Source: Chara braunii (lineage: Eukaryota; Plantae; Charophyceae). Taken from it: a DNA stretch of 64,000 nucleotides. Of the stretch, positions 46,300-47,285 are shown piece by piece; within the stretch, counting starts at the first letter, position 1; each line of letters opens with the position of its first letter. The stretch covers positions 1,807,782 to 1,871,781 of the forward strand of contig BFEA01000032.1 of NCBI GenBank assembly GCA_003427395.1, written 5' to 3'. The position numbers and the translations under genes were made by a program. Under the pieces are notes generated by a model. That model had not been told where the DNA came from, did not search any database, and saw only the letters and a list, made by a program, of their open reading frames with translations.

Positions 46300-47285
46300 T
46301 GCTATCTGTTAGATCGACTGTCGTCGTGAAGGGCAGATGTGTCTAACAATAACTCATGAAATAAATTAGGAACTCTCTACCGGATCGACTGTCGTCGTGA
46401 CGGGAAGGGGGTTCTAACAATAACCTAGGAACTAAATTAGGTGCTCTCTACCGTAACGACTTTGGTCGTGACGGAAAGAGGGTACTAACAAATACTTATG
46501 AGTTAGTCCAGGTGCTCTCTACCGGATCGACTGTGGTCGTGATGGGACGAGGGTACAAACAAATACATGTGAACTTATTTACGTATTCTCTACCGGAACG
46601 AATGTCATCGTGACGGGACGAGAGTACAAACAATCAATTATGAACTAATCTTAGTACTCTCTATCGGATTGACTGTCATCGTGATGGGACGAGAGTACAA
46701 ACTAGCACATGTAAACTAATCTAAGTGCTCTCTACCGGAACGACTATCATCGTGATGGGACGAGAGTACAAACAAACTCATGCGAACTAATTTAAGTACT
46801 CTCTACCGGATCGGCTGTCGTCGTGATGGGACGGGGGTACGGACAAATACTTATGGACTAAAATAAGTACTCTATACCAGATCGATTGTCATCGTGATGG
46901 GACGAGGGTACAAACAAATACTCATAAACTAAAGTTGGTACTCTCTATCGAATCGATTGTCGTCGTGATGGGACGAGGGTACAAACAACCACTTACGAAC
47001 TAATCTAAGTACTCTCTATTGGATCGACTACCGTCGTGACGGGTAGAGGTACCTGACAGCAACTTATGAGCTAGATTAGGTGCTCTCTACCAGATCGACA
47101 ATCGTCGTGATGGAAAACGAGTACTAACATACTTATGAGATAAATTAGATACTCTCTACCGTAACGACTGCCGTCGTAACGAGCAGGGGTGTCTGACGTT
47201 GATTTGGGAACCACACTCGATATTCATGTGTAGTTTACCTTACTCCCTACCGGATCGACTGTCGTCATGACGGGAAGAGGGGTCT
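46300..47285 (+). repeat. Array of ~14 hairpins, 71-bp period
   Basis: Unit GTACTCTC-TA-CCG-GAT-CGAC-TGTC-GTCG-TGA-CGG-GAC-GAGAGTAC at ~46372, 46444, 46515 ... 47152 and 47241. Confidence 0.9.

Follow-up and report, generated by a model that had tools for sequence, protein, structure and literature searches.

The question raised by this locus is whether a tandem array of short hairpins in the genome of the charophyte alga Chara braunii is maintained as RNA structure and, if so, what such an array might do. We analyzed 64,000 nucleotides of forward-strand DNA around it (contig BFEA01000032.1, hereafter the window), in which the first-pass annotation had noticed 14 hairpin-forming units and had read them as a multivalent protein-binding RNA scaffold, shaped by selection on structure rather than by neutral satellite expansion. 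The array turns out to be a cis part of the LTR of a decayed giant Ty3/gypsy retrotransposon, lying 2.2 kb before the 5' LTR end, and not a free-standing RNA.

Layout and Fold of the Hairpin Array

A motif scan and a covariance model both recover 14 RNA hairpins on the + strand at positions 46297-47287, each unit joining a 45-nt hairpin with a tandem G.A/A.G internal loop to an A-rich linker of ~26 nt, which is itself non-random and contains a recurring A-rich motif. TRF reports the repeat at 46312-47177 with a period of 71, 12.2 copies and 76% matches, and the claim of 14 hairpins with a 71-nt period is confirmed. Unit starts follow 46299 + 71n (n = 0-11) and then fall at 47149 and 47240, the spacings being 11 times 71 nt, then 69 and finally 91 nt.

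Proceeding inward, the unit folds as an 8-bp outer stem, a 2x3 asymmetric loop, a 3-bp stem, a 3x3 loop, a 4-bp stem and a tetraloop. This matches the fold drawn earlier, with the outer stem degenerate or shifted in units 1, 11, 13 and 14, and the three variants that had been quoted as keeping the pairing were located in units 2, 13 and 3. A pattern spanning the loops gives 12 matches versus 0 expected. Folding of five tested units on the + strand yields z values from -1.4 to -6.9, with energies below those of their own reverse complements, and the mean z of array units is -2.4, whereas three further satellites in the window give -0.5 to +0.6 on the + strand. Satellites other than the array lie at 35932-37105, 17466-18710, 16636-17493 and 19540-19992 (units of 81, 91, ~170 and 53 nt, respectively); the 81- and 91-nt units fold no better than shuffles. 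The segment around the array is rich in hairpins; a smaller kind, with a stem of 5-6 bp and a loop of 4 nt, recurs in about six scattered copies over 46213-48090 (+).

The first-pass annotation had called for a search of Rfam, in which the array found no match at gathering or E-value thresholds. Neither the unit nor the hairpin called motif A below was matched when metagenome and viral contigs were scanned for exact patterns.

Selection on RNA Structure

The 14 window units were evaluated alone and together with the 13 units of a sister copy of the element, L005, giving a set of 27 units. In the window array alone, 88.6% of stem cells are paired, a value reached by 2/500 shuffles, and there are few double-sided compensatory changes (5 cells, against 2.6 in the shuffles, 60/500). 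In the 27 units, pairing amounts to 86.9% versus 83.8% after shuffling (0/500). The covariation score of this set exceeds that of shuffles (0.280 vs 0.224, 0/500), and its double-sided changes are marginal (11 vs 6.9, 46/500).

Within the stems of the 27 units, G.U pairs are found 63 times versus 10 for A.C. Since the element has a strand bias, we took as neutral background the polarised substitution spectrum measured in other regions of the element. This spectrum predicts a G.U share of transitions of 48% at G-C pairs and 65% at A-U pairs, and the observed G.U:A.C ratios are 29:10 and 34:0, respectively. Departures from the majority pair keep the pairing in 64 of 88 cells and break it in 24, against a neutral expectation of 45% kept; when each pair type is counted once, the result (18 paired vs 20 broken) is not significant, by a count that saturates. 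The tree of the units is nearly star-like, with window and L005 units intermixed, so that the cells represent partly, though not fully, independent events.

Column identity is 0.93 for the G.A/A.G positions, 0.80 for the stems, 0.66 for the third loop pair and 0.65 for the linker. Stems are significantly more conserved than linkers (p = 0.002), in agreement with the earlier impression that the linkers drift faster. Among the window units G.A is present in 11/14, A.G in 13/14 and U.U in only 10/14; over the whole set the tandem of G.A and A.G, for which a sheared geometry is assumed, occurs in 21/27 units, U.U in 16/27 and all three together in 13/27. It follows from these identities and from the frequency of U.U that the tandem G.A is the conserved feature of the internal loop, while the third position may be U.U, A-U or G.U, the first being merely its commonest state. 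The loop had originally been described as G.A/A.G plus U.U, of which the tandem stands and the fixed U.U, with its linker-like conservation, does not. Altogether, the shuffle tests of pairing and covariation, the excess of G.U and the pair-keeping departures, set beside the non-significant count by pair type, support the proposal that the 71-nt array is real and under selection as + strand RNA structure.

The Host Retrotransposon

The 5' LTR of the host element extends over 33701-49489 (+), beginning with TGTCG and ending with CGACA; its start was set by the LTR pair of a related element, L010, and by the match to the 3' LTR of L005. It measures 15.8 kb and contains extra satellite and microsatellite tracts, whereas the LTR of L005 measures 11.1 kb. 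The PBS at 49492-49509 (+) is complementary to a tRNA 3' end, which we take to be of the tRNA-Asp type. It is followed by a broken gag region at 52533-54378 (+), with an acceptor-like site at 52533-52543 and an ATG at 52562, and by a broken pol at 54795-59036 (+), in which protease, RT, RNase H and integrase succeed each other in this order. The arrangement of gag and then PR-RT-RH-IN, recognized with Pfam in stop-free pieces, is that of Ty3/gypsy; the Pfam analysis of window pieces detected neither a chromodomain nor a second RNase H. Lacking a chromodomain and an archaeal RNase H, and having extra ORFs on both sides of gag-pol together with large non-coding regions, the element displays the features of the non-chromovirus OTA/Athila clade (PMC6317226), to which they would assign it. 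Its close protein relatives are without exception gene models of Chara braunii.

The copy in the window is dead, and the alignment of this copy with L005 ends at 63416, short of a 3' LTR. As measured in L005, with the LTR start taken from the L010 pair, the element is ~37 kb long; the LTR copies of L005 are offset by 25750 nt and their 1.9-kb overlap is 100% identical, perhaps as an effect of assembly. Besides L005, elements L009, L010 and L011 also show LTR pairs. (A purine tract at 63348 was considered as a PPT adjoining the 3' LTR and rejected, since in L005 it is separated from the start of the LTR by ~300 nt, and since the copy in the window ends at 63416.)

Upstream of gag, at 50795-52182 (+), lie two broken copies of an orphan ORF, orfX1 and orfX2, the latter with its ATG at 51457 after an acceptor-like site at 51429-51438. 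This ORF is duplicated in the window element and retained by relatives that have no pol. In a profile search of 1.8 billion representatives it proved confined to Chara, with eight proteins of C. braunii and a further match that is probably spurious; a word search with orfX2 gave no match. Searches for Pfam, PDB and fold matches of orfX were negative, with nothing at E < 0.001 in the fold searches, and weak terminase or resolvase fold matches, none of them below E 0.001, are not taken as evidence. Two structure predictions were poor (pLDDT 38 and 52) and presented no recognizable RNA-binding fold.

Other features of the element may be recorded here. After pol, at 59427-60937, there is a broken, highly charged and coiled-coil-like extra ORF, present also in L001, L005, L006 and L007, for which the piece tested had no Pfam match. 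A block of ~500 nt, each copy with a terminal (TTA)n tract, occurs three times inside the LTR (39065-39575, 40709-41214 and 42698-43165) and is found also in the LTRs of L001, L005 and L007. About 10 nt inside the LTR start, a near-perfect short palindrome (33711-33730) is kept in all subfamilies (window; L007-L011) and is possibly a signal for integrase or for DNA binding.

Different Hairpins in the Same Slot

The sister copy L005 is 81% identical to the window over 45919-49551, and between these copies the array has diverged further (68-85% identity) than the LTR downstream of it (80-91%). A bulged hairpin at 45937-45972 (+), hereafter motif A, marks the equivalent place in eight LTR copies and covaries across subfamilies, with 98% pairing and 8 double-changed cells versus 2.9 (0/500 shuffles) in seven sequences. 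(Motif A was considered also as a hammerhead of the retrozyme kind and discarded, as no catalytic core was visible by eye and no Rfam match was obtained.)

The slot of the array is filled by unrelated hairpins in L001, L007, L009, L010, L011 and a second element of the window. In all, at least four unrelated unit types occupy the slot, and the GA motif is wholly absent from the sister arrays. In L001 the slot holds a 162-nt unit folding as a long hairpin, for which the minus-strand fold is at least as good; in L007 it holds small perfect hairpins at a matching distance from the LTR end, motif A having been lost in an inversion. The second window element, whose LTR starts at 27048, carries at 30470-31620 (+) an array of ~15 units with a fixed TAAGTT loop and covarying stems. 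The same type, comprising 8-15 hairpins in each of this element, L009, L010 and L011, combines a fixed TAAG(A/T)T loop with stems that change freely, and its 28 units show double changes in 12/12 pairs (76 cells vs 28 shuffled, 0/500), with 43 G.U versus 9 A.C. L002 has the LTR-end motifs and no array was seen in it, while L003 and L004, which are more distant elements, and L006, which is without the LTR region, are uninformative for this comparison. The covariance model of the 71-nt unit recovers only its 27 training units in 312 kb, and the other unit types are thus not detectable homologues of it. Judging from these comparisons, what persists is the slot with its hairpin format, whereas the unit itself is replaced.

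At 27048-33700 lies a related LTR, which carries a motif A and a hairpin array of its own; the large element appears to have been inserted into it at ~33700, and 33435-33676 still matches the LTR of L008. Inside this neighboring LTR, at 28076-28178, lies a U6 snRNA-like sequence (Rfam 46.5 bits, with a degenerate 3' part), a captured or pseudogene copy. L008-L011 form a non-autonomous family of pol-less LTR elements with a period of 13-14 kb and 6-kb interiors (~8600-14850), which contain an orfX homologue and a second unknown ORF, with no pol and no recognizable gag. Next to the elements in L007 (3928-8305) and L001 (19064-19680), the region of the LTR end and PBS is duplicated in inverted orientation. 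Farther upstream in the window, a 2.9-kb direct repeat of 88% identity (6057-8956 and 20458-23376), probably the LTRs of another element, has an RT fragment (9922-10410) between its copies and is followed by a (GGGGTAA)n tract at 23484-23652.

Predicted Splicing of the LTR and Leader

Motif A directly abuts a predicted donor (donor 1) at 45979-45987 (+; GT at 45982), and a GTA follows motif A at the equivalent place in the window, L001, L005, the second window element and both LTRs of L010, though not clearly in L011. The predicted acceptor 1 at 48589-48601 (+), with an AG ending at 48596 after a pyrimidine tract, is conserved in seven aligned LTRs, of which six have the AG intact, and also in L010, and the acceptor of L005 is mutated; in most copies a short stem covers it. 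Donor 1 and acceptor 1 delimit a predicted intron of 2.6 kb that holds the array. A second acceptor-like site in the LTR, at 48863-48874 (+), is kept in L005 and L007. The predicted donor 2 (AG/GTAAGT) lies at 49322-49329 (+), ~165 nt upstream of the PBS, and AGGTAA(G/T) is present ~165 nt before the PBS in 9/9 elements. Acceptor-like sites precede the ATG of orfX2 in 5/5 elements and that of gag in 4/5. The conservation of these donors and acceptors contrasts with the intron sequence, which is not conserved.

The donor upstream of the PBS, together with the acceptors that precede the ORFs, would imply a spliced leader. If the predicted sites are used, neither the array nor the PBS would remain in spliced mRNAs, and copying would then be possible only from unspliced RNA. 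Moreover, an intron in the LTR would be lost whenever spliced RNA is copied, so that its persistence would need a bias for unspliced RNA (compare BARE, PMC3735527). The array could also fall in U3, and its transcription would then be restricted to the 3' end of the element.

Possible Function of the Array

We see about an even chance that the array is a multivalent protein-binding cis tag on the unspliced genomic RNA, serving its export or packaging. The transcript would probably start upstream of motif A and possess a long spliced leader. Of the predicted introns, the first would contain the array and a later one the PBS, both being then carried only by the unspliced genomic RNA. The 13-14 hairpins would provide many sites for one protein, the tandem G.A/A.G and the conserved 3' arm forming the recognition surface, and the array thus bound would select the unspliced RNA for nuclear export and/or packaging, while units would arise and turn over by duplication under selection that keeps the fold. 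The binder would most likely be element-encoded, either Gag or orfX produced from a spliced mRNA in the manner of Rev or C. elegans CERV: the turnover of units among subfamilies points to such a reader, which in turn would explain why the hairpins are subfamily-specific. The location of the array in the LTR, the conservation and + strand polarity of its fold, the sharing of its slot with unrelated arrays and the conserved splice-like signals are observed, whereas transcription, splicing, protein binding and the role in export or packaging are what we infer. As a candidate, a multivalent array that binds protein, already proposed in the first-pass annotation, is supported. Only tentatively do we extend it to the possibility that streptophyte-alga retrotransposons have a Rev/RRE-like system of their own, in which orfX from a spliced leader mRNA would bind the array in the LTR intron and license the unspliced genomic RNA. 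The hairpin and the protein would diverge together, and every subfamily, the pol-less ones with orfX among them, would thereby read its own array.

Among the alternatives, it is unlikely that the repeats act at the DNA level as cis-regulatory elements of U3, such as enhancer boxes, Sirevirus-like palindromes or VANC-like anti-silencing targets, with hairpins that are incidental or work as DNA. LTR arrays that differ among families are known (PMC4728375; PMC5735166), which, like the orphan status of orfX, would suit this explanation; so would a start site that places the array in U3. However, the excess of G.U over A.C and the strand-specific G.A tandem are at odds with it, as are stems that are free in sequence and yet keep their pairing, which recognition of double-stranded DNA does not need, and the location of the array downstream of a covarying hairpin and a GT donor.

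A polycistronic precursor of hairpin-derived small RNAs, tuning or decoying host silencing, appears improbable. In miRNA precursors the guide is carried by the stem, and the sister type with its fixed loop and free stem is the reverse of this; the hairpins of the array are, besides, only 45 nt long and interrupted by two internal loops. The presence of many hairpins in a predicted intron nevertheless agrees with such a precursor, which has been proposed for Sirevirus palindromes (PMC4728375). Improbable, too, is a control of splicing in which the array would bind host proteins or fold the intron, thereby slowing splicing and maintaining an unspliced pool with no direct role in export or packaging. 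The position between donor 1 and acceptor 1, together with the covarying hairpin at the former and the short stem over the latter in most copies, would be well accounted for, but a host factor would favor one conserved unit and the slot contains at least four unrelated ones.

We find it very unlikely that the array is a neutral by-product, namely a hairpin amplified by slippage or RT template switching whose pairing is inherited and not selected. Tandem repeats are indeed common in large non-chromovirus elements (PMC6317226; PMC11963269), and the paucity of double changes in the window array and the non-significant test by pair type would be expected; against this, stems are more conserved than linkers, pair-keeping changes exceed the measured neutral spectrum, the sister type covaries strongly and arrays have repeatedly and independently come to occupy one slot.

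Sites of K-turn or box C/D type for L7Ae-family proteins (Snu13, L30) are hardly tenable, because the likeness noted in the first-pass annotation, a tandem of G.A and A.G often followed by U.U as at the start of the box C/D non-canonical stem, comes without the 3-nt bulge 5' of the G.A pair that a standard k-turn requires (PMC5689011), without box C or D in the unit consensus, with a U.U that is variable, with no Rfam match, with a covarying 3-bp stem (90% paired) next to the G.A pair and with sister arrays devoid of the motif. An alternative K-turn register that bulges CCG was discarded, as it needs a weak helix and gives up the covarying stem. The same low standing applies to a SECIS-like element: SECIS elements have AUGA on the 5' arm, an upper helix of ~11 bp and an AAR apical loop, and the array has UGA on the 3' arm, an upper helix of 4 bp and a loop that is mostly UGUC, again with no Rfam match.

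Returning to the preferred reading of a cis tag on unspliced RNA, the literature that we searched, outside which lie most subscription journals including the Chara genome paper, gave no description of the element or of its array. Export or selection of unspliced RNA by LTR retrotransposons of the plant lineage has not been directly studied (PMC12786077), and no function is known for the tandem repeats of large Gypsy elements (PMC11963269). With its defined cis element, its candidate for a trans factor and the natural swaps represented by at least four unrelated units in the slot, the present family renders both questions testable; it also provides a case of tandem transposon repeats under selection as RNA structure.

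Comparison with Known Systems

As a whole, the element may be compared with non-chromovirus OTA retrotransposons such as Athila, Ogre and Retand, which likewise are large Ty3/gypsy elements; they share with it additional ORFs on either side of gag-pol, tandem arrays specific to the family and a PBS that is not of the tRNA-Met type (PMC6317226; PMC11963269). Known OTA elements reach ~24 kb with LTRs of up to ~5 kb, and the arrays of Retand, of unknown function, lie between pol and the 3' LTR (PMC6317226; PMC11963269). In contrast, the Chara element with its ~37 kb and 11-kb LTRs exceeds the size range of the land-plant survey and bears a structured array inside the LTR.

The LTRs of Sirevirus elements (maize Ji and Opie) contain multi-copy, hairpin-forming motifs that vary in number and sequence among families (PMC4728375), and the array resembles them in each of these respects. 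Sirevirus elements are, however, Copia, and their motifs are short, near-perfect palindromes situated upstream of the TATA box in U3, which have been read as cis-regulators and siRNA hotspots. The array belongs to a Gypsy element and consists of imperfect 45-nt hairpins with internal loops, which have a + strand G.U bias and stem covariation and lie between predicted splice sites.

HIV Rev/RRE, IAP RTE, MusD MTE and Cer1 CERV (PMC12786077; PMC10309623) serve as models of how the array might work, with a structured RNA restricted to the unspliced transcript and an element-encoded protein from spliced mRNA; CERV of C. elegans Cer1 is a precedent for an element-encoded exporter of this origin (PMC10309623). 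No similarity of sequence or fold to these systems was found, and theirs are single branched structures rather than tandem arrays of hairpins. The VANDAL/VANC system (PMC5735166) provides a parallel of another kind, since it also has element-specific, tandem non-coding targets that differ between relatives and are paired with an element-encoded protein. VANDAL is nonetheless a DNA transposon and VANC binds DNA motifs, whereas the signature of the Chara array is that of RNA structure. What sets the array apart from known LTR repeats is the combination of strand-specific, covarying RNA hairpins with a predicted intronic position and with repeated replacement in one slot.
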